DNA of 64,000 bases from Mobula hypostoma. Lineage: Eukaryota. A model generated the notes under the pieces. It searched no databases and was not told the DNA's origin. It saw only the letters and a program-made list of their open reading frames with translations. Shown here piece by piece: positions 1 to 64,000 of the stretch. The stretch covers positions 17,422,001 through 17,486,000 of the forward strand of contig NC_086106.1 of assembly GCF_963921235.1 (NCBI RefSeq), given 5' to 3'. Made by a program: the position numbers and the translations under genes. How positions within the stretch are numbered: position 1 is the stretch's first letter; each line of letters starts with the position of its first letter.

Positions 1-199
1 ATTGATAAACCTGTGCCGAAGTTCGCATCCAAGATTGCTTTTTAAATGGTTCCGAGTCCCAAACCCAGACAGCCCCTTCCCCAACTACCTTGCGGCCGGG
101 CAGGTTTTATATTTCTGGAAGGCAGGTGTAGCTGGATGGTTGGCGAGCGGCAGAAACCCAGGTCCCGGGACAAGTTGCGCCCAGGACGACCTGACAATG

Positions 200-740
200 A
201 GCCGGGGCTTCCGGCCTCCTGCGGACACATATCCCACAATGCGCCGCGCCATCAAGCAACTTTATCTGATCAGCCAGCGCCCTCCGGGTCACGTGACGCC
301 CGACCCGCCGCCCGCACTACGCATGCGCCGTCGATCAAGGCGCCCCCCCCACCCACTCTACATCAAAGGCTCTGCGCCTGCGCGGTGCACACCCCCCCCC
401 CCGATTGTAGGCTCTCACAAGGACGGAGCGGGCGCGAGTCGACCGGCGGAGAACGGGGTGGGAGTCCGTTGGCCGGGGGGGGGCTGGGGAGAAAACACCG
501 ACCAGATGAGCCGCGGGTCGGGAAGCGGCCGCCGCAGCTGCCGGTTGGTTGGCCGAATCGATCGCCCACGTGACCGCGGCCCCCGGCCTCGCGTCGTGAC
601 GTCACGCGACTCCCGCCGCATGGCTCCTGATGGACGGTCGCCTTGGCCAATCGGAGCGCCGGGAGGACTCGGCCCCTTTGTTTGTTCAGCTAATTGGGGC
701 GTGACCTGGACCCCGGGGTCGATTCAGTTATCAATGGGCC
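200..740 (-). promoter_or_regulatory. ZNF-cluster promoter module, unit A (gene lies off the left edge)
   Basis: CpG-rich. The reverse strand carries the same ordered motifs as units C-F: CCAAT, GGTCACGTG, GGCCAAC, GCATGCGTAGT, GTCACGTG, GCTGATCAGATA and a ZNF143-like site (TCCCACAATGCGCCGCG at 232-248 on +). Bases 1-200 align to the intron of unit E (47250-47360). Confidence 0.75.
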
Positions 741-744
741 GTCA

Positions 745-1330
745 AGTTTATTGTCAATTAATGATAATAACCATATAATGTATATAGAAACCAGACAACC
801 AGGGTGTAAAGTACAGCAGTACACATAACGTGATAATTTATAAAGGTGAGGATTAAATCCACAGATGAATCACACATAAATAACTAACTAGATTAAATAT
901 TGTAAAGTTCGGAACAGATTAACCAGTGACAGTTCGAACACGATGTGGCAGGGGGTTCGGAAGCCGAATGGCCCGAGGATACAAACCGTCTCCCACCCTG
1001 ACCGTTCTTGTCTTTATGCATCGGAGTCTCCTGCCCGATGGTAGAAAGTCAAAGAGGAGGCTGGATGGACGGGTGGGATCCTTGTACGCAACGCTGCTGA
1101 TAAATCTCCCTGACGGGTGTTGTACGATCACCTCAGCCGTTCTCACAGTCCTTTGTAGGGACTTCTGGTCCGATGCTCTGCTGCTGCCGTAGCAGCTTTA
1201 TCCGGACCTCTCAGTGGTGCTCCTGCAAAACGCAGTTAAAATGCGGGGGGGGGGGGGGAGCCTTGCTTGCCTCGGTGTTCTCGGAAGTGGAGACGCTGCT
1301 GGCCCTTTTTTTCAGGGAGGTGATATTAAG
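745..1330 (-). mobile_element. LINE 3' fragment (Rex1/Babar-like), degenerate
   Basis: Reverse-strand TTTATTGTC tail plus a 'HPSGR...RCIKTRTVR..DGLYPRAIRL' C-terminal motif (ORF 919..1146). Confidence 0.6.
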
Positions 1331-1374
1331 GGACTAGGTGAAGTCATCGGGGATGTGAGCTTCCAGAAACCTGG

Positions 1375-1552
1375 GGGGAGGGGGGGATCGTTTCTCGCTG
1401 CCGCTTACGCGCGGGAGGGAGGGGAGCTGGGGGGCAGGACTTTGGGGTTCTAACATTCAACTGTCGTTCATTTAGTGGATAGTTGCAAAGAAAAAACATT
1501 TCAGGATGTATATTGTATACATTTCTCTGACATTAAATTGGACCTTTAAACC
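1375..1552 (+). repeat. Dispersed SINE-like repeat (inverted copy at ~60130-60360)
   Basis: GCTTACGCGCGGGAGGG...GATGTATATTGTATACATTTCTCTGACATTAAA recurs in reverse complement at 60130-60300. Confidence 0.65.
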
Positions 1553-1554
1553 TC

Positions 1555-2629: not shown

Positions 2630-3403
2630 CCGGGAGGTTTTTGTGAATGGACAGCGTGTAGGGATCTCCACTATGTCTGAGTGTTTGCCCTGAACGTGCT
2701 TCACCCCGGATCTGCTGCCAGTAAATTCACCACCTCTCCACTCATTCTGTTCTGGGACCCCTGCTTTTGGAGATTTTTTTTTATACAAGGCTTGGATAAG
2801 GAAGGAGAAATGTGGGCTTGTAGCTTTGCAGGTGACACAAGTATTGGTGTTGTGGACGGTGTAGAAGATCGTTGTAGGTCGTTGATAAGATGCAGAGCTG
2901 GGCTGAGAGATGGCAGATGAAGATTAAGACAGAAAAATGCAAAACGATGCGGTGTGCACGGTCGAATCTGAAGACAGAGGACAGGGTTAAACACAGGATC
3001 ATTAGCAGGGAAGCAGCAAAGGGGTCTTGGCTCTACATTCAGAGATCCCCTACAGTTGCCGCGTAAGTTGATCGGCTGACTACGAATAGTGCTTTAGCCT
3101 TCAGTGGTCAGAGGATTTATTTCAAGGTCAGCAATACAGCTCTATAAAACTCCCCTTAGACCATGCTTGGAGTATCTTGGGTATAGCTCCTGCTGCCTCA
3201 TTATAGGAAGGATTAAGAGAGAGGGTGCGAGGTTCATGCTGCTGGGTGTTCTAGGAGACGTGCCACACACATGGTGTGTTGTGTTCGTTGGTGGAGGGTG
3301 ATGTGCTTTGCCTTAGTGAAGTCAAGAGAGTTCCAGACGGAGGCAGCGCCAGTGGGGAAAGGTGTGTGAAAGACCGATACGTTGGGGATATTTAAGAGAC
3401 TCG
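2630..3403 (+). repeat. Duplicated block (old CR1-like remnant), copy 1
   Basis: Near-identical to 11615-12391. Confidence 0.9.
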
Positions 3404-4195
3404 TGTCCAGCAACAAGAAAAGAAAGTTGGAGATCTGTGTGGCAGGGAAGTGTTAGGTTGATCGATGTCAGCTCAACATTGTGAGCTAAAGGGCTTCTGC
3501 TGTTCTAATTTTGGAATAAACAGACTGTATCATTGAAAGAACACTGATTTATTATTTTTTAACCACAGCATTATAATATGGCCCAGATTTTCACCCACTT
3601 CCCACGGCCAACACTGACAAAACACACCACAGATAACGTCCAGGGCTAATCCAATGGCGCCCCCACAACCAACACCTCTCCCACCCTCCGGGTCCCAGAG
3701 TATCCCAGCCCAGAACTTTATCAGTCAGTCCTGTCTCGTCACTGAGAGTCCAGATCCCAACCTGTGACTGCCAGGAGGGGCGTGGGGGCTCTGCAGAGGG
3801 TGCGGATGAAGTTCATCAGGACCCTGGGAGGATTGGAGGGCGTCAGCGAGACCGGCAGGTTGCAAAAACATGGGTTACGTTCTCTGGAACTTCTGGCAGA
3901 AGTGCTTCCAAGCCCCCCCCTCCCCTACCCCGTGCAATCAGCTCAATCAGTTTTATTGCTGGTTCGATAAGGACAATCAACGTCTATCTCTTCTCACTCC
4001 CTCTGACCGTGATATGCTGAGCCCACTTCCCCCTGCCTTCCACAACCACTCCAACACCACCCCCGCACTTCACCTTTCCTCCCTTGCCCCCTCCCTCCAT
4101 CCCACCCTATACTTCCCGTGAAATTTGGAAGGCAGAACATTAGGAAAGCTGTAGGCCCTGACGGTGTCTCTAAGGCACCGTGCACATCAGCCAAT

Positions 4196-8870: not shown

Positions 8871-9039
8871 CGCGGACCTGCATCATTACCCCCACCCCCC
8901 TCACGATTCTATCAGGGGGGAATAAACTCAATATAATACAGGAGAAAACTCGCAGCTGAGGGGAAGAACAGGGCCACCAGGAAAGCACACAAACTTCTCC
9001 CCCCATCCTGACACACACACAGCACACAACGCCCCCCCA

Positions 9040-9753
9040 CCCCCGACTGTAGAGCACACCCAGCGACGGTGAGTGAGGGGTCTCCTGCAGTCAGGACAGG
9101 CAGAGCACCTCCGTCGCATGAGGGTCCACACTTTGGCCTCTGGAGCTGCGATGATCCGGCCCGCGGAGGGCGGAGGGCTTCTCCCCGGCGTGGTCTGCGC
9201 CCGGTGGTCCTGGAGCCGGGGCAGGAACGGGTCCGTTCGCCGGCGCGGGCACGCCGATGCTCCAGCGGGCTCGAGGGGTGGGCGAAGGCATTGCCTCTCC
9301 GGCACCGACAGCTCCTCGTCGCGAACCCGGGTTCAGGGAGCAGGCGAAGACCCCGCCACGCTCAGAGCCCGGGCCCTGCCTCTCCCCCACACGGTGCACT
9401 GGAGTCTCTGGAGCCGCGAAGACTGGGTGAGGCTCTTCCCACCGAGAGGGCGGGCAAAGGGCTCCTCCCGGTGCGCCTGCGGGTGTGAGAGGCGGGCGAA
9501 GGCCTTACTGCATAGCGTGCCGGGCAACGTACACACCCCTCCGTACACACCCGCTGTGCTCGGAGGCGAAGGCGTCGTCGGGCTCTCCTCCCAGCGGGCA
9601 GGGGGCACCGTCCGTCAGATACCAGCGCTCTCGACTCATTCTGCCAGACCTCGATGCGACTGTGTGTGGCCGGAGCCTTCTCTCTCCTGTCACACTGTTC
9701 GAGCTCTGTGACGCTGACGTGAAGGGAGTCTTTCCCAGCAGAGTGCCTGATAC
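9040..9753 (-). pseudogene. Heavily decayed C2H2 ZNF paralog (unit B)
   Basis: Acceptor TCTGTTCAG|GTATC at 9753 matches units E and F. The N-terminus reads LGGEPDDAFASE with ATG replaced by CTG at 9594. Broken fingers LPGTLCSKAFARLSHPQAHR, GKSLTQSSRLQR and CSACPDC; frameshifts. Confidence 0.8.
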
Positions 9754-9779
9754 CTGAACAGACAAACAGAAAACTTCTT

Positions 9780-10295
9780 CAGTACTGTGCAACAGTCTGA
9801 GGTTAACTACATCTTTTATACGGCCTCCACACGGCCCTGATCTCAACATCATCGAGGCTGTCTGGGATTACCTGGAGAGAGGGCAGCAAGCGAGACCGCC
9901 AAAGTCTGCAGGAGAGCTGTGGCAAGTTCTCCCAGATGCTCGGAACAACCACCGGCCGATTTTCCTATTAAAATGCACACCTTCTATTATTACTGATATA
10001 CTGTTCAGCTTGGTTGATAGTTTAACTCTTATTATACATATTGATATGTTGACTTGATTATTTTAACTTTTTTTTTGTTGTTGATTTTCAATAATAATTA
10101 ATAAAAATTTGAAAATGAAATAAAAACTGCACACCAGTGTACCTCAGAGAACTGATGCAGTTTTAAAAGGCAAAGGCTGGTCACACTAAATACTGGTTTA
10201 ATTTAACTCTTTACTGTTTACTGCTCTTTATAGTGATTTTTTTTTGCTATTCAGAAACTTTTCATTTCATGAACGTTTGAAAGCAGCTTCACTTT
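9780..10295 (+). mobile_element. Tc1-like transposon remnant inside the unit B intron
   Basis: Begins CAGTACTGTGCAA; encodes PPHGPDLNIIEAVWDYLER...KSAGELWQVL (the Tc1 catalytic-E motif). It is itself interrupted at ~9982-10122 by an A-tailed insert flanked by AAAA(C)TGCACACC. Confidence 0.75.
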
Positions 10296-10299
10296 GCAG

Positions 10300-10866
10300 A
10301 AACAGACATCAAAGTTGCTGGTGAACGCAGCAGGCCAGGCAGCATCTGTAGGAAGAGGTACAGTCGACGGTTCAGGCCGAGACCCTTCGTCAGGACTAAC
10401 TGAAGGAAGAGTTAGTAAGAGATTTGAAAGTGGGAGGGAGAGGGGGAGATCCAAAATGATAGGAGAAGACAGGAGGGGGAGGGATGGAGCCAAGAGCTGG
10501 ACAGGTGATAGGCAAAAGGGATATGAGAGGATCATGGGACAGGAGGTCCGGGAGAAAGACAAGGAGGGGGGGAGAAACCCAGAGGATGGGCAAATAGTGA
10601 GAGGGACAGAGGGAGAAAAAGGAGAGAGAGAGAAAGAATGTGTGCATAAAAATGAGTAACAGATGGGGTACGAGGGGGAGGTGGGGCCTTAGCGGAAGTT
10701 AGAGAAGTCGATGTTCATGCCATCAGGTTGGAGGCTACCCAGACGGAATATAAGGTGTTGTTCCTCCAACCTGAGTGTGGCTTCATCTTTAGAGTAGAGG
10801 AGGCCGTGGATAGACATGTCAGAATGGGAATGGGATGTGGAATTAAAATGTGTGGCCACTGGGAGA
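10300..10866 (-). mobile_element. Penelope-like element 3' part; hammerhead motif at 10361-10401 has GAAA changed to GAAC
   Basis: Reverse complement of 60490-61030; flanked by TTTGCAG. Confidence 0.8.
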
Positions 10867-11249
10867 TTTGCAGGATTTTTATTTACATCTGCCTACATTC
10901 ACAGTGATAAACGTTATAGCCTTCCTCCGTAATTGTAGCACATAATTCTATTTTACCACTATGTATGGCATGACCTGTCTGGATGGCTTGACGCCTACAA
11001 TTTTTTAAAAAAGTATTCGAATGGAAATGTTCAGTTATAAATCAAAACTTATAACAAGGTGCCGAGGTTCGAATCAAATTTCACTTTTTAAATTGGTCCC
11101 GAGCCCCAAATCCAATTAATTCTTTCCCATCCCAGCGAATTTCCCTTTTGTCTGCTTCTCAAAGGCACACCAAGCTGAAATGTTAAAGGGGGCAGGGGGC
11201 AAATACAGGCACTGAAATCGAAGTATTCAAGAACACTTGCATCAAGAAT

Positions 11250-11570
11250 ATTCAGCAGAGATCTGGACGTAGCCCCAGGAATTCTGCTCGTCCACAGAAC
11301 ATCCCACAACGCTCGTCACCAGAAGCCAGATTCATTGCTGCCTGGCCTGCTGAGCTCCTCCAGCGTTTTGGGCGTGCTGGTCGGATTTACAGCGTCTGCT
11401 GATTTTCTCTTGCTTGATCAGCCGGCGTCCCCTGGAACCCGTCGAAAGCTGCGCGTGCTCAGACGTCCGGGCCCCAGCTCCACGCTAAATCACCTGCGCG
11501 TTGGACACCACTTGGCCGTTGGTTCCCACGCAACGGCGGGGCAGGGGTCGCAAATGGGATACTTGGAGGG
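11250..11570 (-). promoter_or_regulatory. Degenerate promoter module, unit B, split by a Penelope tail fragment (~11335-11412)
   Basis: TGATCAGCC, CTGCGCGTGCTC, TCCCACAAC and TTGGCC occur in the family order. Bases 10890-11240 align to the introns of D, E and F (e.g. GCCATCCAGACAGGTCATG). Confidence 0.65.
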
Positions 11571-11614: not shown

Positions 11615-12391
11615 AGGGTTTTTCTGAATGGACAGCATGTAGGGATCTCCACTATGTCTGAGTGGTTGCCCTGAACGTGCTTCACCCCGGATCTGCTGCC
11701 AGTAAATTCACCACCTCTCCACTCATTCTGTTCTGGGACCCCTGCTTTTGGAGATTTTTTTTTATACAAGGCTTGGATAAGGAAGGAGAAATGTGGGCTT
11801 GTAGCTTTGCAGGTGACACACGTGTTGGTGTTGTGGACGGTGTAGAAGATCGTTGTAGGTCGTTGATAAGATGCAGAGCTGGGCTGAGAGATGGCAGATG
11901 AAGATTAAGACAGAAAAATGCAAAGCAATGCGGTGTGCACGGTCGAATCTGAAGACAGAGGACAGGGTTAAACACAGGATCATTAGCAGGGAAGCAGCAA
12001 AGGGGTCTTGGCTCTACATTCAGAGATCCCCTACAGTTGCCGTGTAAGTTGATCGGCTGACTACGAATAGTGCTTTAGCCTTCATTGGTCAGAGGATTTA
12101 TTTCAGGATCAGCAAAGTTGCATTGCAGCTCGATAAAACTCCCCTTAGACCATGCTTGGAGTATCTTGGGTACAGCTCCTGCTGCCTCATTATAGGAAAG
12201 ATTAAGAGAGAGGGTGCGAGGTTCATGCTGCTGGGTGTTCTAGGAGACGTGCCACACACATGGTGTGTTGTGTTCGTTGGTGGAGGGTGATGTGCTTTGC
12301 CTTACTGAAGTCAAGAGAGTTCCAGACGGAGGCAGCGCCAGTGGGGAAAGGTGTGTGAAAGACCGATACGTTGGGGATATTTAAGAGACTC
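11615..12391 (+). repeat. Duplicated block, copy 2
   Basis: Near-identical to 2630-3403. Confidence 0.9.
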
Positions 12392-12469
12392 ATGTGTCTA
12401 CTCCTGCTCCTATTTCTGATGTTAACTCCCGGCGCATGGCTGCTGATCGACAGCCACTTTCGCCAATCA

Positions 12470-13486: not shown

Positions 13487-14004
13487 GCTGGAGGAACACA
13501 GCAGGTCAGGCAGCATCCGGGGTGGGGGGGGGAGGGAAATAAACAGTCGACGTTTCGAGCCAAGAAGCTTCCACGGGGCTAGAAAAGAAAGCGACAGAAG
13601 CCAAAGTGAAATGGCGTGGTCGGGGGGGGGGTTTGGGGAAGGTGAGGGGATGGGCGATGGGTTATGAAGGAGTGAGGCACGACAGTTGGAAGACGTAACG
13701 GACTGGAGGAGGAGGAACCCAAGGGGATCAGACAGCGGACCAGGGAACAAAGGGAAGGAAAGGCCCGAGGCAGGTGATGAGCCCATGAAGAGCTCAGGGG
13801 AGGAGAAGAGAAGGGGTGAGAGGGGTGAAAGTCAGAAGCGGGGGGAAGAGTGGCCCAGGAGTGTGCCAGTGGTCCGTGTGGAGGGATATTCACTACGTCT
13901 GACCACGACTGATGGATCGGGACGGGAGCTGCATTCCCGATATGTTGCCAGTAATTAACTTGCTCTCCGCTAATTCTGTTGCAATTTTTATAATGGACCA
14001 TCTG

Positions 14005-17000
14005 ATATAGGAGCAGAATCAGGCCATTTGGCCCATCGAGTCCATTTCATCATGGCTGTTCCGATATTCCTCTCAGCCCCAGTCTCCTGCTTTCTCCCCG
14101 TATCCCTTCATACCCTGACCAATCATGAATCTACCAACCTCTGCCTTAAATACACCCAACAACCTGGCCTCCAACAGCTGCCTGTGGCAACAAATTCCAC
14201 ACATTCACCACCCTCTGGATAAAGAAATTCCACCTCATCTAAAAGGACTCCCCTCCAATCTGAGGCTGTGTCCTCTGGTTTTCGACTCTCCAATCCTAGG
14301 AAGCATCCTCTCTAAATCCACTATCGAGTCTTTGCAATATTCGATAGGTTTCAATTATGTCACCCCTCGATCTTCAGATTCCAGTGAATAAAATGCCAGA
14401 ATCACTTCCACCAACTTCCTTTGAACCCTCTCCAATGTCAGCACATCCTTTCTAAGATAAGGGGCACAAAACTGCTCACAATACTCCAAGTGAGGCCTCA
14501 CCAGTGCTTTATAAAGCCTCAGCATTACATCCTTGCTTTTATATTCTAGTCCTCTTGAAATTAATGCTAACATTGCATTTGCCTTCCTCACCTCAGACTC
14601 AACCTACAAATTAACCTTCAGGGAATCCTGCACAAGGACTCCCACGTCCCTTTGTGCCTCTGTGCTTTGTATTTTCTCTCCATTTAGAAAAAGTCAACCC
14701 TTTCATTTCTTCTACCAAAGTGCACTTCCCGACACTGTATTCCATCTGACATTTCTTTGATCATTCTCCTAATCTGTCGAAATCCTTCTGTAGCCTCTCT
14801 ACTTCCTCAAAACTACCTGCCCCTCCACCTATTGTCATATTGTCTGCAAACTTTGCAACAAAACCATCAATTCCATCCTCCAAATCATTGATATATAATG
14901 TAAAAAGAACCAGTCCCAACACAGACCCCCGTGGAACACCAGCAGTCACCTGCAGCCAAACAGAAGAGGCTCCCTTTATTCCCACTCTTTACCTCCTGCC
15001 AATCAGCCACTTTATCCATGCTAGTGTCTTTCCTGTAACACCAATGGGCTCTTACCTTGTTAAGCAGCCTCATGTGCGGCACCTTGTCAAAGGCCTTCTG
15101 AAAATCCAAGTACACAAACTCAACTGATTCTCCTTTGTCTATGCTGCTTGTTATTTCTTCAAAGAATCCAACAGATTTGTCAGGCAAGATTTTCCCTTGA
15201 GAAGACCATGCTGACTTTGGCCTATTTTATCAGGTGACTCCAAGTACCCTGAGACCTCATCCTTAATAATCGACTCCAATGTCTTCCCAACCACGGAGGT
15301 CAGACCAACTGGCCTATCATTTCCTTCTTCAGCCTCTTTCCCTTCTTAAATAGCAATTCTTCCAGTCCTCCGGAACCATACAAGAAGCGTGAAAGATCAT
15401 CACTAATGCATCCATAATCTCTTCAGCCTGCTCTCTCAGGACCCTGGGCTGTAGACCATGTGGTCTAGGTGCCTTACCTACCTTCAGACCCTTCAGTTTA
15501 CACAGAAACTTCTCCCAAGAAATGACAACTTCACACACTTCTGCCCCCCGACACCTTTGAACTTCTGGTATTCTGCTGATGTCTTCCCCAGTGAAATCTG
15601 ATGCAAAAATACTTATTCAGTTGGTCCGTCATTTCCTTGTCCCCCATTACTACCTCTCCAGCATCATTTTCCAGCGGTCCAATATATATTCTTGTCTCTT
15701 TTCACTTTATGTAACCAAAGAAACTTTTGCTGGCCTCTTTATTATTAGCTAGCTTATCTTCATTTTCCATCTGTTCCTTCTTTATGACTTTTTAGTTGCC
15801 TTCTGTTGGTTTTTAGAAGCTTCCCAATAATTTTTGCTCAATTATACACCCCATCTCTTTGGCTTTGACTTCTCTTGTCAGCCATGGTTGTGTCATCTTG
15901 CCTTTAGAATACTTCTTCCTCTTTGGGATGTATCTATCCTGCACCTTCTGAATTGTCTCCAGAATTTCCAGCCACAGCTGCTCTGCCATCATCCCTGCCA
16001 GTGTTCTTTTCCAATCAATTCTGGCCAGCTGCTCTCTCATGCCTCTGTAATTCCCGTTACCCTATTGTAATACTGATAAAACTGGCTTGAGCTTCTCCTC
16101 CTCAAACTGTAGGGTGAATTCCATCATATTATGATCACTGGTCCCTGAAGATCTTTTACCTTCAGCTCTCTAATCAACTCCAGTTCATTGCACAACACCT
16201 AATCCAGAATAGCTGGTCCCCTAGCAGGCTCAACCAAGAGTTGATCTCAAAATCCATCTTGTAGGCACTGCAGAAATTTCCCCTCTTGAGATCCGGTACT
16301 AACCCAACTTTCCAAATCTACCTACATATTGAAATTCCCCATGACCATCAAAACATTGCATTTTCCATCTCATATCTTTACTAGTTGGGGGTCTGTATAC
16401 AATTCTTGTCGGGGTCTTTTTACCCTTGCAGATCCTTAGTCTATCCACAACGATTCAACACCTTCTGACCCTATGTCACCTCTTTCTAATGATTTGCTTT
16501 CTTCTTGTTTTTAAAAAACCAACAGAGCCACCCCACCCCCCTCTGCCTACTTGCCTACCCTTTTGATACAATGTGTATCCTGTCCTTCTGATACAACATG
16601 TATCCTGTCCTTTTGATACAACGTGTATCCTTGGATATCAAGCTCCCAGCTATGATCTCCTTTCAGCCATGATTCAGTGATGCCCACAATGTCACACCGG
16701 CCGACCTGTAACTATGCCTACGTTTATCTACCTTATTCCATAAACTGCACACATTCAAATACACTTTCAGTCCTGTATTCACCCATTTCAATGTTGTCCA
16801 CCTTTTACACTGCAACTCATTCCAACTTTGCCCTGTCACCAGCCTCTCCTTGCGACAAGTTGCCCTGAAATAGTGGGCAAGCCCACGGCTTGAGGCCCAG
16901 TCCTTGCTACAAACGAGGCCACGTGGCGACCCAACCACCTGTTGCACCACCAAACGTGGTTGGCGTTTGTAAACCAACCACCTTATCCTCAGCACTATAA

Positions 17001-19029: not shown

Positions 19030-19300
19030 CCTACCTTCTGGTGGGCCAAGGGTTGGGAGGACCGAGTGAAGACCTTCTCCCGCAGTCGGGACAGCCAAAA
19101 CTCCTCTAACCCGTGCGGGTCTGCCGGTGGCTCTGGAGCGGTGACCATCCCAAGGAAGCCCCTTACCGCGATGGTGGAAGGCGATGGCTTTCTCCCTGAC
19201 GTGGCCGCCCGGTGGGGCAGGAGCCGGGAGGAGTTGAAGGCCGTGCCGCAGTCGGGGCATGCGAAGCTTCGGGGCCGCTGGTTGAGGTGGGTGTGTGGTG
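19030..19300 (-). pseudogene. Decayed extra zinc fingers downstream of the unit C stop
   Basis: Out-of-frame SFACPDCGTAFNSSRLLPHR, SFGCPDCG and KVFTRSSQPLAHQK. Confidence 0.75.
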
Positions 19301-19302
19301 CG

Positions 19303-37120: not shown

Positions 37121-37122
<2 letters not shown>

Positions 37123-37175: not shown

Positions 37176-37176
<1 letters not shown>

Positions 37177-37790: not shown

Positions 37791-37799
37791 AGTATTTGA

Positions 37800-46664: not shown

Positions 46665-47170
46665 CTTCTGAAGATGGCGGAGTGATACCGCCCACCGGCT
46701 CATTGACAAACTGAGGGCTGAGTCCTCCCGGTGCCCGGATTGGCGAAAACCACTGTCAATCATAAACGGGGTATCGAACGTCACAATGTGGGGCGGGCTT
46801 TGTGGTCACGTGAACGATCGGGTCGGCCAACGGGCGGCGGCGGCGCCTGGCTCACGGTTACGCGGCCCATCACCTCTTCGGTGGGTGTTTTCGCACGGAT
46901 TCCCTCCACCAGTCCCCGTTGCCGATGCCCGGCCGCCGTCTACATAGGCGCCGGGGGTTGTTTATAATGGAGCGGGGAGTCGGGGAGCTGTACAGTAGAG
47001 CATGCGCAGTGCGTTCGGCAGCTCTTAAGTCACGTGGTGTGCAGGATTTTGGCTGATCAGATAGAGCTATTTATGGCGCGTGGGGCATTGTGGGAAAAGT
47101 GTCCGCCATTCTCGTTCTGCGGAAAATTGAAACGCAAATCGTCAAGATTTCTGCAGATTAAACTTTGATT
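46665..47170 (+). promoter_or_regulatory. Promoter module, unit E
   Basis: AAGATGGCGG, GATTGG, ACGTCAC, GGGGCGGGC, GGTCACGTG, GAGCATGCGCAGT, GTCACGTG, GCTGATCAGATAGAGC, GCATTGTGGGAA (47085) and CCGCCATT. Confidence 0.8.
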
Positions 47171-47674
47171 TCAGATCCTAACGTAATCTTACCGCCTGCA
47201 TTTACTTCCTCACCCATTTTTAATATTGTAGCCTTTGAGGAGAGTACAGAAATATAAAATCGCTGGACTTCAAGCAAGCTGGGTGAAAAAAGCAATTAGT
47301 TTTTGGTTGCAGAGTTTTGGGAGTTGGAACCAAGTGATAGTAGGTGCGACCTTTGGCACAATGATTCAGATTCTAACAAAATATGTGTAAAAGATTTTGT
47401 ATGCAATCCATGCCATACTTAATGTGGTAAAACAGTATTTTGAATTACAGTTATGGAGAAAGGTTGTAAAGTGTACTGCCTTGAACCTGTCTTTGATAAG
47501 TCTTCTGTTTGCATTTTCAGGTATCACTGACTCGCTTTGTATGACCTTCTCCAGACCAGTGTCACATAACTTAAGTAATGCTATGGATTATTGAAAGTTA
47601 AGCGACATATTCACACCAGGATCTTGCAGAGTGACTTGGAGTATCAGGATCTGTCTGACAGTGTATATCGAGCG

Positions 47675-48586
47675 ATGGAAGGAAAGCCCCATGACATCCC
47701 TGTGGACACACTGGCCTCCGTGGATGTGCAGAAGAGCAGTCGGGAGGGCCTGTTGTCCTGTACACTGTGCGGGAAGGTGTTTGCCTACCAGTCCGTCCTG
47801 CGCCGCCACTTGCAAGGCCACAGTGATGACCGGCCCTTTAGGTGTGAAGAGTGTGGCAAGGCCTACAAGAGTGGCCAGGACCTCCTGCAGCACCAGCGGA
47901 TGCACAACAGGGAGAAGAGCGTCACCTGCCCCGAGTGCAGCAAGGTCTTCATCCGCTTCTCGCACTTGGAGGCGCACCTGCGCACCCACACCGGCGAGCG
48001 GCCCTTCTCCTGCCCTGACTGCGGCAAAGCCTTCCAGCAGTCCTCGAACCTGCAGAGGCACCAGCGCACCCACACCTGCGAGCGGCCCTTCTCCTGCCCC
48101 GACTGCGGCAAGGCCTTCCACCAGTCCTCGAACCTGCAGAGGCACCGGCGCAACCACAGTTGCCTGCGGCCCTTCTCCTGCCCCGACTGCGGCAAGGCCT
48201 TCGTCCAGTCTGCCCAACTAGCGGAGCACCAGAGGGTTCACACTGGAGAGAAGCCCTTCACCTGCCCCGTGTGTAGGAAGAGTTTTGCCCGGTCATCAGA
48301 GCTCCACGTCCACCGGCGGACCCACACGGGGGAGAGGCCCTACGCCTGCCCCGACTGCGGGAAGAGGTTCAGCACGACTTCAATCTTGCTGAAACACCGG
48401 CAGGTCCACAGCGAGGAGCGGCCCTTCCCCTGCCCCGACTGCGGCAAGGCCTTCAAGAGCCCCGTGCACCTGAAGCAGCACCACGTGATCCACACCGGGG
48501 AGAGGCCCTTCTCCTGCCCCGTCTGCGGGAGGTGCTTCACTTGGTCGTGGCAACTGCAGAACCACCGGCAGACGCACGTGGAGTAG
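47675..48586 (+). CDS. C2H2 zinc-finger protein, 303 aa, 10 fingers (unit E)
   Basis: The ATG at 47675 (GCGATGG) is homologous to the C, D and F starts; acceptor TTTTCAG at 47520. Confidence 0.92.
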   Translation: MEGKPHDIPVDTLASVDVQKSSREGLLSCTLCGKVFAYQSVLRRHLQGHSDDRPFRCEECGKAYKSGQDLLQHQRMHNREKSVTCPECSKVFIRFSHLEAHLRTHTGERPFSCPDCGKAFQQSSNLQRHQRTHTCERPFSCPDCGKAFHQSSNLQRHRRNHSCLRPFSCPDCGKAFVQSAQLAEHQRVHTGEKPFTCPVCRKSFARSSELHVHRRTHTGERPYACPDCGKRFSTTSILLKHRQVHSEERPFPCPDCGKAFKSPVHLKQHHVIHTGERPFSCPVCGRCFTWSWQLQNHRQTHVE

Positions 48587-50795: not shown

Positions 50796-51399
50796 GATGT
50801 CGGTTCAGGGCCAGAGTCTGTGGTTGGGGAGTTGAAGAGGATGTGATGCCAGGGTATTGTCCGTATCCCTCCGTTCCCTGCCTAAGACACCCAAGGTTGT
50901 CTTCAACTCCTCTATTGTATCTTCCATCAACATCACCATCGAGACACCTGCCAGTTTGTTAAAAAAAAATTCAAAACCTTTCCCCTTACATCTCATTCGA
51001 ACTTATCCCCTCTCCCCTTAACTCCGTGGCCTCTCGTACTAAACACTTTCATCCTGTGACAAAGAAACATACTGGCTGTCTATATCTCTCATAATCTTAT
51101 AAACTTCTATCAGGTCTTAAACACAAGAGATTCCGCAGATGCTGGAAATCCAGAACGACACACAAAATGCTGGAGGAACTCAGCGGGCCAGGCAGCATCT
51201 GTGGAGATCAATAAACAGTCGACGTTCCGGGCCGAGACCCCTCATCAGGACTGGAAAAGAAGGGGAGGACGCTGGAGTAAAAAGGTGGGGGGAGGGGATG
51301 GAGGACAAACTAGATTCAGGAAGGTGATAGGTGACGAGAGGTGGGTGGAAGGGTCGAGGGGCTGGAGGAGGAATCTGATAGGACAGGAGAGTGGACCGT

Positions 51400-54300
51400 A
51401 AGATATAGGAGCAGTATGAGGCCATTCAGCCCATTGAGTCTGCTCCGCCATTCCATCGTGGCTGATCCTGGATCCCCACACCCTTGCCTTCTCATCGTCT
51501 CCCTTGATGACCAATCAAGAAACGATCAACTTCGGCCTTAAATATATCCACGGATTTAGCCTCCACTGCAGTCTGTGGCAGAGCATTCCACAGATTTACT
51601 ACCCTTTGGCTAAAAGAATTCCTCTGCCCCTGAATTTTGAGGCTGTGCCCTCTTGTTCTGGATACCCCCACCATAGGGAACATCCTCTCCACATCCACCC
51701 TATCTAGTCCTTTCAACATTCAGTAGGTTTCAATGAGATCCACCCTCGTTCTTCTGAAACCAAGCCCAAAGCTGCCAAACACTCCTCGTGTTAACCGCTT
51801 CGTTCCTGGAATCATCCTCGTGAACCTCCTCTGGACTCTCCAATGACAACACATCCTTTCTGAGATTTGGAGCACAAAACTGTTGACAGTACTCTAGTGC
51901 AGCCTGAACAGTGTCTTGTAAAGCCTCACCACCATCACCTCCTTGCTTTTATATTCTATTCCCCTCGAAATAAACGCCAACATTACATTTGCCTTCTTTA
52001 CCACACATGCATCCTATAAATTAACCTTCTGGAAGTCTTGCATGAGGACTCCTAAGTCCCTCTGCACCTCTGATGTTTGAACCTTCTCCTTATTTAGATA
52101 ATAGTCCGCACTATTGTTCCTTTTACCAAAATGCATCATCATACATTTCCCAGCCCTGTATTCCATCTGCCACTTTTTTGCCCATTCTTACAATTTGTCT
52201 TTCGTCCTGCTGCAGTCGCGTCACTTCCTCAGCACCACCTACCCCTTCACCTATCTTTGTATCATCCACAAACTTTGCTACAAAGCCATAAATTCCATTA
52301 ACTAAATCATTGACAAACAATGTGAAAAGCAGTGTTCCCAATACTGACCCGTGAGGAACCCCGCTAGTCACTGAAAGCCAAACAGAAAAGGCCCCCTTTA
52401 TTCCCACTCGCTGCCTCCTGCCTGTCAGCTATTCCTCTATCCATGCCTGTATCTTTCCTGTAACACTGTAGGATTTTGTGGCAGCTTATCAAACACCTTC
52501 TGAACATCCAAGTAAGTGACATCCACTGCCTCTCCTTTTGTCCACCTGCTTGTTACTTCCTCGAAGTAATAGATTTGTCAGGCACAATTTTCCTTTACAT
52601 AAACCATGCCGACTTTGACTCATTTTGTCATTAGTCTCCAAGTACCTCGAAACCTCGTCCTTAATAATAGACTCCAACACTTTCACAACCATTGAGGTTG
52701 GGCTAACTGGCTTACAATTTCCTTTCTTTTGCCTTCCTCCCTTCTTAAAGAATGGAGTGACATTTGCAACCTCCCAGTATCTCAGGACCTTGCCAGAATC
52801 AAGTGATTCTTGAAGGATCATGACCAATGCGTCCATTATCTCTTCGGTAATCTCTCTCAGGACACTGGAATGTAGTCCATCTGGATCAGGTGACTCACCC
52901 ATCTTAGGACCTTTGAGATTGCCCTCACACTTTTCCCTTTGTAATAGCACTCCTGCTCTCTGACACTCACGGACCTCTGGCACACTGCTGGTGTCTTCCA
53001 CAGTGAAGACTGATGTAAAGTACCCATTATGATCCTCTACTATTTCTTTTTCCCCCATTACTACCTCACCAGCATTATTTTTCTGTGATCCTATATCAAC
53101 TCTCGCCTCCCTTTTACTCTTTATATAACTGAAAAAACTCTTCATATCCTGCTTTATATCATTGGCTAGTTTGCCCTCATATTTCATCTTTTCCCTTATA
53201 GTTTTTTTAGTTGCCTTTTGTTGGATTTTAAAAACTTCCCAATCATCAAACATCTCATTCACTTTTGCTACCTTATGTGCCCTTTCCTTGGCTTTTCTGC
53301 AGTCCTTAACTTCCTTTTTCAGTCCCAGTTGCCTTCCCCTGCCATTTGAGAACTTCTTCCTCTGTGGGACATATCTATCCTGCATCTTGTGAACTATTCC
53401 CAGAAACTTCAGCCACCTCTGCTCTGCCGTCATCCCTGCCAGTATCCTCCTCCAATCCACCTGGGCAAGCTCCTCTCTCACCCCTCTGTAATTCCCTTTA
53501 TTCCATTGCAATACCAATACACGTGAGTTATGCTTCTCCCTCTCAAACTGCAGTATGAATTCAATCATATTATGATCACTGCCTCCTAAGGGTTCCTCTA
53601 CATTAAGCTCCCTAATAACATCTGGGTTATTACACAACACCCAGTCTAAGGTAGCCTTTCCCCTAGTAGGCTTGAGCATAAACTACTCTAAAAAGCCATC
53701 TCATGGGCACTCGACAATTTCCTATCTTACGATCTGACACCAACCTGATATTTCCAATGCTCTTGCATACTGAACTCCCCAATTACAATTGTGTCATTAC
53801 CCTTATTACATGCCTTTTCCAGCTCCCTTTGCAATCTCAACCCCACACCTAGGCTGCTATTTGGAGGCCTAAATATGCATAATGCTTTTATTACCCTTGC
53901 AGTTTCTTAACTCTACCCATAAAGATTGGACATTCTCTGATCCTAGAACCACACCACTGCCTATGCCTTCCTGCCTGTCCTTTCAATACAAAGTATATCC
54001 TTTGATCTTTGTTGGTGCACGGCCAAGTGGTTAAGGTGTTTGTCTAGTGATTTGAAGGTCACTAGTTCGAGCCTTGGCTGAGGCAGCGTGTTGTGTTCTT
54101 GAGCAAGGCACTTAACCACACATTGCTCTGTGACGACACTGGTGCCAAGCTGTATGGGTCCTCATGCCCTTCCCTTGGACAACATCGGTGGCATGGAGAG
54201 GGGAGACTTGCAGAATGGGCAACTGCCGGTCTTCCACACAACCTTGCCCAGGCCTGCGCCCTGGAAACCTTCCAAGGCGCAAATCCATGGTCTCACGAGA

Positions 54301-54960: not shown

Positions 54961-56084
54961 ATGGGAGAAAGGGAAGAAGGAGGGGCCTCTGGAGGAGGTG
55001 ACAGGCAGGCGAAGAGGTCAGAGGTCAGAGTGGGGAATAGAAGAAGACGGATGGGGGAGGGGAGAAAAGAAAAATATGAAAGTGACCAGAAGGAGAAATC
55101 AAGGTTCATTTATTATCAAAGCACGTTTACTATATATGAGCTTGAGATTAGTTTCCTTACAGGCAGCCACAAAACAAAGAAACACATTATTACCCATTTT
55201 AAAGAAGTCTGTCAGAGACCCAAAGTGCAGAAGTTGTGACAGTGAGTTCACAGCTACAAAGCCAGGCGTCACTGCAGCGGCCCTGGGGGCCCGGTAGTTT
55301 CAGGCGCAGAAGCCAGTAAGCCTCACGGAGCAGCGAGCTGAACCAGCCGTCCCTCGCCTCGCCTCCCGGGGTTAAATCGTACAAACCTCAGGTCGTTCCT
55401 GGCTCTCAGAATCCCTCTGCCTCATCTCGGTTCTGCCGCTGTGACTCGCCTCCAGCAGTGGCCAAACATGGGCTCATTCCTGGCTCTCGGGCCTGGGCCT
55501 CGCTGCCTCGATTCGGCCTGTACCCACCGCGCAGCAACCATCGTGACTTCGGTTCACGTGGCAATGATGGCAGGTCGTAGGGGAGGTTCAGAAGCTCAAC
55601 TCCGAAAGGACGGTAACTGGCTGTTTATTGCAGTGATTGTTTTCCAGAAAAAAAAGTGTGATTAATAAATTCGCAGTTTTCTTCGTTCTGTTTACTACCA
55701 AGCGAGTAGTCACTGGGCTTCACCAGGGCCATCTTAAATCAGCGCTCACGCCATCGGGTTGGAGGCTACCCAGACGGAAGATGAGGTGCTGCTCCTCCAC
55801 CCTGAGGGTGGCCTCATCCTGTCAGAAGAGGAGGCCGTGGACTGACAGGCTGGAATGGGAATGTGAGAGGAATTAAAATGTTTCACCACTGGGATATTCC
55901 TCTTTTGGTGGATGGAGCAGAGGTGTTTGACAAAGTGGCCCCCCAACATAGAGGCGACGGCTGGGGAGCACCGGACCGAATAGACGACCCCAACTGATTC
56001 ACAGGCAAAGTGTTGCCCCGAACGGAAGTGAATGGATGGGTGTGTCATCTCTCTGGCTTGTGGGATATATATTTGTTTATTGTT

Positions 56085-56312
56085 ATTTTATTTATTGAGA
56101 TACAGTTTGGAATGGGCCCTTCCAGCCCTCCGGGACGTCCTGTCCAGCAATCCCCCCGATTTAATCCTGGCCTCATCACGGGACAATCTACAACGACGAA
56201 TGAGTCTACCGATCAGAGCTTCGCTGGATGGTGGGAGGAAACCAGAGCACCTGGAGGAAACCCACGCGGTCACCCGGGAGAACGTACAAACTCCGGTGGC
56301 GGGAACTGAACC
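56085..56312 (-). mobile_element. V-SINE fragment
   Basis: Reverse strand GGAGTTTGTACGTTCTCCC...GTGGGTTTCCTCCAGGTGCTCTGGTTTCCTCCCAC. Confidence 0.7.
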
Positions 56313-59492: not shown

Positions 59493-60364
59493 CAACCAAA
59501 GTGCGAAAGAAGGCAAATAAAAAAAAAGTCAATCAATAAACAGTGTTAGGAATTTTGTGGAATCAATAAAAGTGAGTCCGTAGCTTGTGGAACCAGTTCA
59601 GAGCTGCGGTGAGTGAAATCACGCACTCTGGTTCAATAGCCTGATGCTCTCTGCTCCTGAGGTCTGCCGGTGCGGGTCCCGAGGCCCCCGTACTTCCTGC
59701 CAGACAGCAGAGAGCGTGGCCTGGATGCTGGGACCCTTGCTGACTTTGAGGAATGAACTCAGCAGACAGAGCTGTATCCGTGAAGCTGCCTAACCTCCCC
59801 CCCGCACCCCCCACACCGTCGACACGCTCGCCACTGACGACACGGTGGCCCAGTCAGCGTACAGGAGCAAGTTGGGACGTTAGGTAGAGCGAAGCCTCAA
59901 CTCCAACCACTCACTGTGCCAGTAAACTTCAGAATGGGCAGGTTGGGAGACCTGAGCTGATCAGCCGGCCGGAGTGTTCACTGAGATCTGTAACCTCTCA
60001 CTTCGGCAGTCTGAGCTACCCACCTGCTTCAATCACACCACTGCCCAAGGAGCCCATGGTGACTATCGTCCGGTAGCACTTACATCCACTGAAATGAAGT
60101 GGTCTGAGAGGTTCAATACAATCATCCCCTCAAAGGTACATTTAATGTCAGAGAAATGTATACAATATACATCCTGAAATGCTTTTTCTTCCCAACCATC
60201 CCTGAAAACAGAGGAGTGCCCCCAAAGAATGAATGACAGTTAAATGTTAGAGCCCCCAAAGCCCATCCCCCCGCTCCCCTCCCTCCCGCGCGTAAGCAAC
60301 GATTTCCCCCCTCCCCCCACCCGCCACCGAGCACCCAAGCGTGAGCAAAGCAACGGCAAAGACA

Positions 60365-61067
60365 AAGTCGCCTGGGGTGATATACTGCGTCCGGTGCTCC
60401 CGATGTGGCCTTTTATATATCGACGAGACCCGACGCAGACTGGGAGACCGCTTTGCTGAACACCTACGCTCTGTCCGCCAGAGAAAGCAGGATCTCCCAG
60501 TGGCCACACATTTTAATTCCACGTCCCATTCCCATTCTGACATGTCTATCCACGGCCTCCTCTACTGTAAAGATGAAGCCACACTCGGGTTGGAGGAACA
60601 ATACCTTATATTCCATCTGGGTAGCCTCCAACCTGATGGCATGAACATTGACTTCTCTAACTTCCGCTAATGCCCCACCTCCCCTTGGTACCCCATCCGT
60701 TATTTATTTATTTATCCCCCCCCTCTCCTTTTTCTCCCTTTGTCCCTCTCACTATACCCCTTGCCCATCCTCTGGGTTCCCCCCTCCCACTTTTCTTTCT
60801 TCCTGGGCCTCCTGATGATCCTCTCACATCCCTTTTGCCAATCACCTGTCCAGCTCTTGGCTCCATCCCTCCCCCTCCTGTCTTTCGTATCATTTTGGAT
60901 CTCCCCCTCCCCCTCCCACTTTCAAATCTCTTACTGAACTCTTCCTTTAGTTAGTCCCGAAACGCCGACTGTACCTCTTCCTAGAGATGCTGCCTGGCCT
61001 GCTGCGTTCACCAGCGTTTTGTGTGTGTTGCTTGAAATTCCTGCATCTGCAGGTTTCCTCGTGTTTG
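60365..61067 (+). mobile_element. Penelope-like element: GIY-YIG endonuclease C-terminus plus pLTR
   Basis: GVIYCVRCSRCGLLYIDETRRRLGDRFAEH...HFN...EQYLIFHLGSLQPDGMN (to 60670); the hammerhead core is deleted at ~60957. Confidence 0.88.
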
Positions 61068-61224
61068 AGCAAAGCCACACACTTGTAGTACTCCAAAGAC
61101 TACTTGTTCACCCGGCATTGGACATGCCACAGGCTCGCTCTCTCCCTAATAGGGGAGAAAGAGATGTCTCCGTTTCACAGCGAGACGGAGACATAACAAA
61201 CAACACTCTGGTTTATCAATAAGC

Positions 61225-62235
61225 TTATTGACATCAAAGTTATCAATAAGCTTCAAGACTTTGGCTTCAATACCTCCCTGTGTAACGGGATCCTCTATTT
61301 CCTCAGTCAGTTGGGATTGGCAACAACATCTCCACGATCTCCATCAGCACAGGCGCACCACCGGGCTGTGTGCTTGGCCCCCCCGCTCGACTCGCTTTGC
61401 ACTTATGACCAATCAGGAGGGAGAAAATCTGGCTGAGCGGTGTCACAACAACAACCTCATTGGAGCCAGTCCTCATCGGAGGATCAGAGGTGGGGAAGGT
61501 CAGCAACTTTAAAATCCTCGGTGTTCTCATTTCGGAGCACCTGTCCTGGGTCAAGCACGTTAGTACAATTACGAAGAAATCATGGCAGCACCTCTAGTTC
61601 CTGAGAAGCTTGCAAAAAAAAATAAATAAATAAATCAGCTTGACATCTAAAACTTTGACAAACTTTTTTGGATGGAGAGTATATTGACTATTTGCATCAG
61701 AGCCTGGTATAGAAACACTAATGCCCTTGAACGGAAAATCTTACAAAAAGTAGTGAATATCGTCCAGTCCATTATGGGTAGAGCCCTTCCCAGCATTGAA
61801 CACACCTACACAGTGTGTTGTTGCAGGAAGGCAGCACCCATCATTAGGAACTCTCAGCACCCAGGACACGCTCTCTCCTCCCAGCTGCCATCAGGAGCAA
61901 GGTACAGGAGCCTCGGGACTCACACCCCCAGGTTCAGGGATAGTTATTACCCCACAACCATCAGGCTCTTGAATCAGAGGGGATAATTTCACTCGACTGT
62001 TCCCACAACCTATGGAGTCAGTTTTAAGGGCTGTTTATCTCACGTACTCAATACTTATTGTTTGTTTATTTGTATTTACACAGTTTATTGTCTATCGCAC
62101 ATTGGCTGTTTGTCCGTCCTTTTGCAGTGGGTGCAGTCCTATTGTGTTTCTTGCATTTACCGAGTACAGCCGCAAGAAAACGGTTTGTATCTGGTGATAC
62201 GTACGTAGTTTGATAATGAATGTACTTTGCACTTT
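61225..62235 (+). mobile_element. Rex1/Babar LINE 3' remnant
   Basis: ESILTICIRAWY...HPGHALSSQLPSGARYRSL...RFRDSYYP. Confidence 0.78.
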
Positions 62236-62484
62236 GGTCTAAACCACTGAATGGTTGCGTAGCTCACAAGTTGGACTATCGACCTCGCTATCTACCTCGT
62301 TATGACCTTGCACCGCATTGTCTCCCTGTGGCGCAGTTTTCTGCTCTTGTTGCCCTTGCTTCTGTTCCACAGTGCGCTGTGCAATGATTTATAAACTGCA
62401 TGCGAGTTAAACCTGCATCGCGGTACACGTAACAACCGATACTGGGTCCTTTGATGTACGACCAGCGCCGGCAACTTGCCCAGC

Positions 62485-63050
62485 CGACCCATGAATCAAC
62501 GGGCCCCGGGTACGCCCCTCGGCCGTCCAATTAATTGGACGACAAACAGAAAGCTGAGCCCGGCCTGTGCTCGGGATTGGTGAAGCGCACTGTCAATCAG
62601 GGGCTACGCGCAGGGAGTTCCGAAGCGTCACAGTGAGGGGCGGGCGCGGTGATCACGTGGGGTGTCGATTCGGCCAACGGGCTGCGGCGGCGCCTGCTTC
62701 CCGGTTGTGCGGCCCATCTGGTCCGGATTTTCCCACGGATTCCCCCCGCCCCGCGCCCGTCCCCGTTGGCGATTCCCGCCCCGCCGCTGTGTGGGAGCCC
62801 GCAGCCGGGGCCTGTCCACCGCGCAGGTTCCGGGGCGGGTGGTTTACACTGGAGCGAGGGGGGTGGGGGCCCGTACACCCGAGCATGCGCACTGCCCTCG
62901 GTAAGTCTCCTTGCGGTGCGGAGCTCGCTGTCTGGTCACATAGAGCTGTTTGTGGCCCGCTGGGCATTGTGGGAAAAGTGTCCGCCATCCTTTTGTAGCA
63001 GAGCAAGACAATCCATGTCCGGCAGTATTTCTGCTGATTAAACTTTACCT
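62485..63050 (+). promoter_or_regulatory. Promoter module, unit F
   Basis: CCAATTAATTGG, GATTGG, GCGTCAC, GGGGCGGGCG, ATCACGTG, GAGCATGCGCACT, donor CG|GTAAGT (62901), GCATTGTGGGAA (62964) and CCGCCATC. Confidence 0.8.
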
Positions 63051-63617
63051 ACTTGTCCTGAGTAGTTTGATTTCAAGTCTGTTTAGCGCCTGTATTTACT
63101 CCCACCTCCTTTAATATTCCAGACTATTATGCCTTTGAGCAGAGGACAGATATAAATTTGTCCTCTGCTCAAAGAAAGCTGGGGGAAAAGAAAACTTATA
63201 TGGCTTTGAGACGCGGAACCATATATAACGTGATAGGGGACGCGATCTTCGGCACAGTGGTACAAGTTTTGATTTATTACTGTCACTTCTACTGAAATAT
63301 GTGAAAAAGGTTTTGTGTGTGTGCCATCCAGACAGATCATGCTGTACACGAGGTGTTAAAACAGAATTGTGTATTGCAATTTCAGAGAAAAACTGTAAAA
63401 TTTACTTCCGAGAACCTATAATTGAGAAGCCTTCTGTTTGTCCTTTCAGGTATCACCGACTCTGCTGAGAAAGATTGTTTTGTATGAGATCTCCACAGCA
63501 GCTCGCAGAGCATAAGTGGGGCATCAGAGCAGAGAAAGTTAAGAGCAAACATTCACACCAAGATCCTTCAGAGTGACGTGGGAGTGCCGGGATTTGACTG
63601 ACAGTGGCCACCACACG

Positions 63618-64000
63618 ATGGAAGAATTGCCCAACGACATTCTAGTGGACATACCTGCATCTGAGGAGGATGGAAGTGTGCAAATGACCAGGCCCGCCAG
63701 GGAGGGCCCGTTGCCCTGCACGCTGTGCGGGAAGGTGTTCGCCTACCAGTCCACGCTGCGGCGCCACTGGCTGGCCCACAGTGAGATCCGGCCCTTCATC
63801 TGCGACGTCTGCGGCAAGGCCTACAAGAGCAGCCAGGACCGCTCGCGGCACCGGCGGATCCACACCGGGGAGAGGATCGTCACCTGCCCCGAGTGCGGTA
63901 AGGCCTTCACCCACTTCTCGCACCTGCAGGCCCACCTGCGCACCCACACCGGCGAGCGGCCCTTCTCCTGCCCGGAGTGCGGCAAGGCCTTCGGCCACTC
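63618..64000 (+). CDS. C2H2 zinc-finger protein, 5' part (unit F, runs off the window)
   Basis: Hand translation gives MEELPNDILVDIPASEEDG...CTLCGKVFAYQSTLRRHWLAH...CDVC...CPEC...CPEC with no stop; acceptor TTTCAG at 63449. Not in the ORF track because it has no stop. Confidence 0.9.
   Translation, partial: MEELPNDILVDIPASEEDGSVQMTRPAREGPLPCTLCGKVFAYQSTLRRHWLAHSEIRPFICDVCGKAYKSSQDRSRHRRIHTGERIVTCPECGKAFTHFSHLQAHLRTHTGERPFSCPECGKAFGH

Follow-up and report, generated by a model that had tools for sequence, protein, structure and literature searches.

We analysed a 64,000-nucleotide window of the genome of the ray Mobula hypostoma (RefSeq assembly GCF_963921235.1, contig NC_086106.1, positions 17,422,001 to 17,486,000 of the forward strand; coordinates below count from the first letter of the window). 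It contains a cluster of six paralogous zinc-finger units, A to F, lying in both orientations. We read this cluster, with a probability of about 0.8, as part of a lineage-specific family of Krüppel-type poly-zinc-finger (poly-ZNF) genes of a cartilaginous fish whose proteins are effector-less, or "naked". Each unit would follow one plan, in which a CpG-rich promoter and a non-coding first exon are separated by one intron from a single coding exon that encodes a leader of about 30 residues and 10–15 fingers.

A cluster of finger-only genes

Units were defined by tblastn and blastn comparison of the window with itself and by a six-way alignment (A1). A regular-expression scan of all six frames found 39 intact C-x2-C-x12-H-x3-H fingers at four places, which belong to the complete genes C, D and E and to gene F, whose frame is open at the window edge (Table 1). 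Unit B is a pseudogene, and unit A is represented by its promoter region. A first-pass annotation of this DNA had listed the same six units, and both scan and alignments bear it out. Within the arrays, fingers recur with a period of 84 nt and are joined by conserved seven-residue, TGEKP-like H/C links; tandem fingers with such links place the cluster in the Krüppel-type C2H2 poly-zinc-finger superfamily. Pfam searches with the C, D, E and F proteins returned C2H2-type families exclusively (zf-C2H2 and zf-H2C2_2, E values down to 1e-116).

All four proteins consist of 28–33 residues ahead of the first cysteine and then of fingers and linkers only, with a 13-residue tail added in C. Array lengths of 15, 11 and 10 fingers in C, D and E agree with the 10–15 given earlier for complete genes with a leader of about 30 residues. 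The helix residues quoted there also match exactly. Positions -1, 2, 3 and 6 of finger 1 read NSKR in C, YSLR in D, YSVR in E and YSTR in F, and the finger 2 helix reads SGSQRSR, SDQDLSQ, SGQDLLQ and SSQDRSR in the same order. The accompanying claim that DNA-contact residues vary on a conserved scaffold holds for C against D and E, but not for finger 2 of D and E, whose helices differ at positions 1 and 5, both off-contact. Every one of the 36 fingers of C, D and E keeps its full set of zinc ligands and an open frame, despite a synonymous divergence (dS) of 0.2–0.4.

Homology among the units extends upstream of the fingers. As taken from blastn and alignment A1, rather than from a global MAFFT alignment of whole D and E, the promoter and first-exon blocks have a mean pairwise identity of 65–73% among paralogues, against ~54% deeper in the intron. 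The promoter is CpG-rich, has no obvious TATA box, and carries CCAAT-like, ACGTCA, GGGCGG, CACGTG and GCATGCGC motifs in blocks common to the six units. Further blocks follow just 3' of the D donor and in the homologous stretches of A to F (34549-34660 in D), with an invariant TTGTGGGA, then CCGCCATC, and also GGAGGGCGCTGGCTGATCAGATAGAGC. They are intronic in D and could represent an alternative first exon or elements of the promoter that lie downstream. As a lead, blocks of the TTGTGGGA/CCGCCATC type resemble ZNF143 and YY1 sites.

Transcription and splicing of gene D

Contigs from four public runs of one study (X1–X4) were placed on positions 33200-39100. About a third of the 31-mers from 34100-37100 occur in these runs. 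All four contain a joint from 34548 to 35813 with GT..AG ends, and their contigs span 34333-34548 and 35813-36287 with 0 mismatches. Depth is zero in two bins of the intron (34579-34775 and 35564-35760). Given this spliced joint and the lack of depth within the intron, we take the runs to be RNA-derived. Gene D is transcribed, and it is spliced exactly at the predicted acceptor. Its true transcription start may lie upstream of 34333, the furthest 5' contig end.

The spliced 5' untranslated region (5'UTR) of D (34333-35965) has three upstream ATGs opening short upstream open reading frames (ORFs) of 11–21 codons, and stops in the main frame. Because these in-frame stops precede the ATG, nothing can be fused to the N-terminus of D through this splice. 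A polypyrimidine-AG acceptor lies 152–168 nt 5' of the ATG in D, E and F alike, with two to four in-frame stops between acceptor and ATG. An upstream effector exon, which the first-pass annotation had also ruled out, is excluded for D by the RNA contigs, and for E and F by the conserved acceptor and the stops, that is, by sequence features only. The earlier claim of such stops in C as well stands in part: C has stops upstream of its ATG, but its acceptor AG is mutated to GG.

Two other splice forms of D were considered. A CAG directly before the ATG was rejected as an alternative acceptor; it is unconserved in C, E and F and unseen in the contigs. Contigs of X1 and X3 contain a joint from 35925 to 37340 (plus strand) that skips the coding sequence (CDS), the shorter side being only 28 nt long. 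It connects a strong donor in the 5'UTR, 41 nt 5' of the ATG, to an acceptor ~360 nt past the stop. The resulting form shows no long ORF. C and E lack its donor, and in F the site is no more than a possible one. The D intron also encloses an ORF fragment derived from a long interspersed nuclear element (LINE) at 34745-35050.

KRAB absence and the leader

We built a hidden Markov model from 50 KRAB boxes of fetched tetrapod proteins; it recovers 219 of the 389 tetrapod ZNFs fetched. Run on 2022 six-frame pieces of the window, this profile found no match (best E 1.2), and the C, D, E and F proteins have no Pfam match to PF01352 (KRAB). Together with the contigs that join a non-coding exon 1 of D to its finger exon, these searches agree with the first-pass description of the genes as KRAB-less, which is established for D and well supported in the other units.

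The leader looks like a decayed finger. Apart from the contact residues, it is the fastest partition in C/D, C/E and D/E, with a nonsynonymous divergence (dN) of 0.37–0.50 and dN/dS of 0.70–0.85. It starts M-GEKP in C and M-EGKP in D and E, which corresponds to the position of the inter-finger TGEKP link. Scored with a position matrix from 35 in-array finger units against fixed-register shuffles, all four leaders do best in one register, with the Met on the T of the link (shuffle fractions 0.0006, 0.009, 0.04 and 0.02); the four are homologous, and the register result is effectively one observation. By its rates and register, the leader would be a former finger evolving almost neutrally rather than an effector domain. 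Because it reads as a decayed finger, the case for a dedicated co-repressor interface within it is weakened, without excluding one.

Searches for relatives of the leader were less telling. Residues 1–40 had no relatives among 5.8 billion proteins, with three candidates and none scored, in a search that needs exact five-residue words and says little. A profile of the leader with fingers 1–2, run against 1.84 billion representatives, was swamped by giant poly-ZNF proteins, and all best stretches begin at profile position 10 or later, which makes it uninformative on the leader.

Selection, turnover and gene conversion

From a codon alignment of C, D, E and F we computed Nei–Gojobori rates by partition, taking positions -1, 2, 3 and 6 as contacts. 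Pairwise dS among the units compared ranges from 0.20 to 0.48. Contact dN is 0.44 for C vs D and 0.49 for C vs E, against 0.15 and 0.16 over the other finger and linker positions, at pooled dS of 0.36 and 0.39. This excess of about threefold is significant in both pairs (Fisher p 2e-5 and 2e-6). Measured against synonymous change, contact dN/dS in the same pairs is 1.1–1.4 and, with four sequences, not significantly above 1 (p 0.42 and 0.35). For D vs E, contact dN is 0.037, other finger and linker dN 0.068 and pooled dS 0.20, giving a contact dN/dS of 0.23; this pair has, if anything, conserved its contact residues more strongly than the other positions. The excess contact change that the first-pass annotation looked for is therefore present between C and D/E, absent between D and E, and nowhere significantly above the synonymous rate. 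Contacts between the old paralogues appear to be freed from constraint or mildly diversifying.

The rest of the array is constrained. Non-contact finger and linker positions have dN/dS of 0.37–0.45 in C/D, C/E and D/E; overall dN/dS is 0.42–0.57 and that of the scaffold 0.23–0.39. Purifying selection acts on the finger scaffold. Finger by finger, C, D and E show almost no variation in 9 and 10.

Turnover proceeds by whole fingers. Array lengths differ in 84-nt units, D having one finger that is missing in C and E, and C having five more at its 3' end. D and E are also a mosaic of old and young sequence. Their dS is ~0.42 over the leader and fingers 1–2 and ~0.04 over fingers 9–11, and their DNA identity is 94.5% in fingers 4–11, against 84% in the leader and fingers 1–3, 68% in the 5'UTR and 76% just past the stop. 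This mosaic suggests that the 3' half has undergone gene conversion or unequal exchange. Because it points to gene conversion, evolution of the cluster would not be purely by birth and death. That mode had been proposed for the cluster, and tandem copies, pseudogene B and arrays of 10, 11 and 15 fingers fit it; what fails, given D and E, is the absence of homogenisation.

Intron loss in gene C

Gene C departs from the common plan. Only ~40 nt lie between its promoter and first-exon homologue and the stretch homologous to the exon 2 5'UTR, an interval of ~440 nt in F. The intron has lost about 400 nt, and both splice signals are mutated, the donor from GT to GA and the acceptor from AG to GG. 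Comparison of the units indicates that the intron was lost by genomic deletion, not by retroposition. In runs X4 and X1, which also carry spliced D mRNA, 90% of sampled 31-mers from the C region (19250-21250) are present. Because its splice signals are gone and its 31-mers occur in runs with empty D introns, gene C, effectively single-exon, is probably transcribed unspliced.

The conserved promoter-proximal blocks that are intronic in D are retained in C at 20826-20961 (minus strand) and now lie within its 5'UTR. Past its stop, decayed out-of-frame fingers (Table 1) read as the remnant of a longer array.

Relatives and known systems

Full-length searches with D and C found generic poly-ZNF proteins only, at no more than 54% identity, many of them KRAB-bearing tetrapod genes, and no orthologue among annotated proteins; an orthologue of at least 70% identity in the allowed length range would have headed the search lists. 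Strict one-to-one orthologues across vertebrates, which the first-pass annotation had named as a sign against its proposal of transposable-element (TE) surveillance, were not found above ~54% identity. Closer matches come from sequencing runs of other coded organisms, which contain 25–39% (organisms B, H and I) or 6–14% of the gene C 31-mers and 5–14% of those of gene D. Such sharing indicates that some of the other organisms sampled, presumably close relatives, have near-identical copies. Judged by these matches, the family is lineage-restricted, yet not private to one species. A literature search, which was not exhaustive, found no description of this ray family.

Among known systems, the cluster resembles the KRAB zinc-finger proteins (KZFPs) of tetrapods, lungfish and coelacanth in its tandem clustering, its fingers on one large exon, its TGEKP linkers, its finger gain and loss, its pseudogenes and its faster contact change between older paralogues. 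Unlike them it has no KRAB exon, its first exon is non-coding, and the protein begins ~30 residues before finger 1; recruitment of TRIM28 cannot be assumed. It also resembles OZF/ZNF146-type "fingers only" proteins, which consist almost entirely of Krüppel-type fingers. Those are conserved single genes, whereas the ray family is multi-copy, turns over fast and has a common promoter and leader exon.

Poly-ZNF expansions are common across animals, in numbers that correlate with retroelements (Wells et al. 2023, PMC10547256). One of them, the FiNZ family, is reported only in cyprinids, has a highly conserved 28-residue N-terminal sequence and represses long terminal repeat (LTR) elements in zebrafish (PMC10547256). 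The ray cluster is likewise lineage-specific and KRAB-less, a poly-ZNF expansion whose proteins start with a short acidic stretch of ~28–30 residues. By published description, not direct alignment, the two differ in that the FiNZ N-terminus is highly conserved, whereas the ray leader is the least conserved part of its protein and decayed-finger-like. TE repression has been demonstrated for FiNZ; the ray cluster is known from sequence and transcript data. The whale shark genome paper (PMC8455134) names the KRAB box among the domains of gene families that cartilaginous fishes lack. Both the LINE fragments of the window and its lack of KRAB are consistent with such a fish. The cluster thus has neither the KRAB domain that defines KRAB-ZNF genes nor the conserved N-terminal domain that defines FiNZ-ZNF genes, and among known kinds it is best classed with lineage-specific effector-less poly-ZNF expansions.

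Interpretation and alternatives

As members of such a family, the proteins would most likely be sequence-specific DNA binders that read long targets and function in the nucleus. Because they have no effector domain, any effect on regulation would be due to their occupancy of DNA or to contacts that the fingers themselves make. Growth and decay of the cluster would involve inversion as well as tandem duplication, with whole fingers gained and lost, arrays cut short by stop codons, B turned into a pseudogene and the intron of C lost; the neighbours D and E would have undergone partial gene conversion. Repeat targeting is plausible by analogy with known families. Several points weigh against this reading. 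The runs X1–X4 are tentatively labelled "RNA?", and their RNA origin is deduced from the joint and the empty bins; direct RNA support concerns gene D only, the transcription of C being read from shared 31-mers; and the dN/dS contrasts, drawn from four paralogues subject to gene conversion, are rough.

The genes could instead be ordinary regulatory or architectural DNA-binding factors with conserved targets other than TEs, at a duplicated transcription-factor locus. Such factors would account for purifying selection on the scaffold, and in D and E on the contacts too, for two fingers near-invariant in C, D and E, and for a housekeeping-like promoter with the motifs listed above; 31-mer sharing with several organisms also suggests orthologues retained in close relatives. 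We consider this possible if somewhat unlikely, since annotated vertebrate proteomes yielded no orthologue above ~54% identity, one unit in six is a pseudogene and finger number varies, a rapid turnover atypical of conserved transcription factors, and the contacts of C against D/E change at about the neutral rate. Rather unlikely, in our estimate, is an analogue of the KRAB-ZNF and FiNZ-ZNF systems that is engaged in an arms race with lineage-specific transposons and silences them by way of a co-repressor independent of KRAB. It would suit a fish lineage that lacks KRAB gene families (PMC8455134), and it has precedents in the metazoan correlation of ZNFs with retroelements and in LTR repression by the KRAB-less FiNZ proteins (PMC10547256). 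Tandem paralogues, a pseudogene, finger turnover, a threefold contact nonsynonymous rate for C vs D/E and the lack of distant orthologues in our searches point the same way. An arms race sits poorly, however, with a contact dN/dS of only 1.1–1.4, not significantly above 1, with D/E contacts kept at dN 0.037 vs dS 0.20, and with fingers 9–10 conserved in C, D and E. Nor does the leader, dead-finger-like and no conserved domain at dN/dS 0.7–0.85, present a visible co-repressor interface, and near-identical copies of C and D in the runs of other organisms mean that the genes are not species-private.

It is quite improbable that segmental duplication left the units as largely functionless by-products that are transcribed from a strong promoter and drift to pseudogenes. 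B is dead, C is without most of its intron and both splice sites, the donor position of E is not GT, D has a CDS-skipping isoform and the leader is near-neutral, but drift would hardly leave 36 of 36 fingers with ligands and frame at dS 0.2–0.4, or dN/dS at 0.42–0.57 overall and 0.23–0.39 in the scaffold. Also unlikely is a cartilaginous-fish counterpart of KZFPs, in which finger-only proteins silence young retroelements with no dedicated effector domain. They would do so sterically, by occupying their sites, or with the help of a co-repressor that touches the fingers or the short leader start, ME-KP-D-PV. If this is true, ZNF-based control of TEs would have arisen independently for a third time among vertebrates. 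As it stands, the naked family is one more lineage-specific poly-ZNF expansion, a kind known to occur commonly among animals (PMC10547256). Its useful results are an RNA-verified gene model (D), the absence of a spliced effector exon and a leader that points to a dead finger. An expressed, fast-turnover, finger-only family is a reasonable candidate for transcriptional control of the large retroelement load of cartilaginous fishes, which lack KRAB-ZNFs.

Remaining units and surrounding repeats

Table 1. Features of the zinc-finger cluster and of its surroundings
Feature	Position	Strand	Details and basis
Unit A	11-685	-	homologue of promoter, first exon and intron start; blastn to D and F upstream regions, alignment A1
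Unit B, pseudogene	9008-11558	-	
Unit B, promoter homologue	11149-11558	-	
Unit B, intron homologue	10898-11136	-	
Unit B, acceptor and 5'UTR homologue	9729-9778	-	
Unit B, decayed finger remnants	9008-9548	-	
Gene C, 5' region	20680-21227	-	promoter/first-exon homologue 20865-21227 fused to finger-exon 5'UTR
Gene C, CDS	19303-20679	-	458 residues: 33-residue leader, 15 fingers, 13-residue tail; ORF, regular expression, Pfam
Gene C, fingers	19342-20580	-	15; six-frame scan
Gene C, decayed out-of-frame fingers past stop	19014-19295	-	tblastn of C; ORF 18975-19730
Gene D, exon 1, non-coding	34333-34548	+	contigs X1–X4, 0 mismatches; start is furthest 5' contig end
Gene D, intron 1	34549-35812	+	1264 nt; GT..AG joint in 4/4 runs
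Gene D, exon 2	35813-37105	+	5'UTR 35813-35965 with four in-frame stops, then CDS; 3' end unmapped
Gene D, CDS	35966-36976	+	336 residues, 11 fingers; ORF and regular-expression scan
Gene D, fingers	36065-36967	+	11; six-frame scan
Gene E	46705-48586	+	promoter/first-exon homologue 46705-47167; predicted acceptor 47520/47521
Gene E, CDS	47675-48586	+	303 residues, 10 fingers; ORF and regular-expression scan
Gene E, fingers	47759-48577	+	10; six-frame scan
Gene F	62483-64000	+	promoter/first-exon homologue 62483-63073; predicted acceptor 63449/63450; ATG 63618
Gene F, fingers	63717-63947	+	3, up to window edge; six-frame scan
Decayed LINE	52126-53682	-	endonuclease end and reverse transcriptase (RT) pieces; RVT_1; endonuclease/RT ORF 52492-53682
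RT fragment	14888-15226		Pfam RVT_1
RT fragment	22743-23120		Pfam RVT_1
RT fragment	27339-27821		Pfam RVT_1

The other units are less complete. The finger exon of unit A would lie beyond the left window edge. Unit B has no ATG, has lost Cys and His ligands, and carries a five-residue deletion and frameshifts; its tblastn matches are weak (26–51% identity). Gene E reads GC instead of GT at the position matching the D donor, and gene F has a strong donor-like site (GTAAGT) after 62899, with a frame that stays open through its three fingers to the window edge.

Repeats adjoin several of these units. Upstream of A and B, a 770-bp stretch is present twice in the same orientation (2636-3406 and 11617-12395) at 96.8% identity; the pair would be either a young repeat or what is left of a recent segmental duplication spanning both units. 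Directly 5' of the gene E promoter homologue, a 104-bp unit is repeated 6.7 times at 98% identity (45951-46649), and the long ORFs found there are repeat artefacts.

The first-pass annotation had placed the units amid TE debris; the retroelement pieces are real, but decayed. RVT_1 has four Pfam matches in the window (E 4.5e-7 to 1.2e-3), two of them just above the Pfam cut-off. The whole window gave no Rfam match at gathering thresholds. Self-comparison aligns 13994-16348 with 51392-53789 and reveals several dispersed repeats of 260–470 bp between the genes. GIY-YIG, a motif of Penelope-like retroelements, is suggested by ORF pieces at 55749-56087 (minus strand) and 60296-60667 (plus strand), the second with a weak Pfam E value of 0.024. 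Around gene D, summed contig depth is very high (up to 57,700), with many loose ends, at 33594-33987, 37534-37730 and 38322-38715; these flanking stretches are abundant transcribed dispersed repeats.

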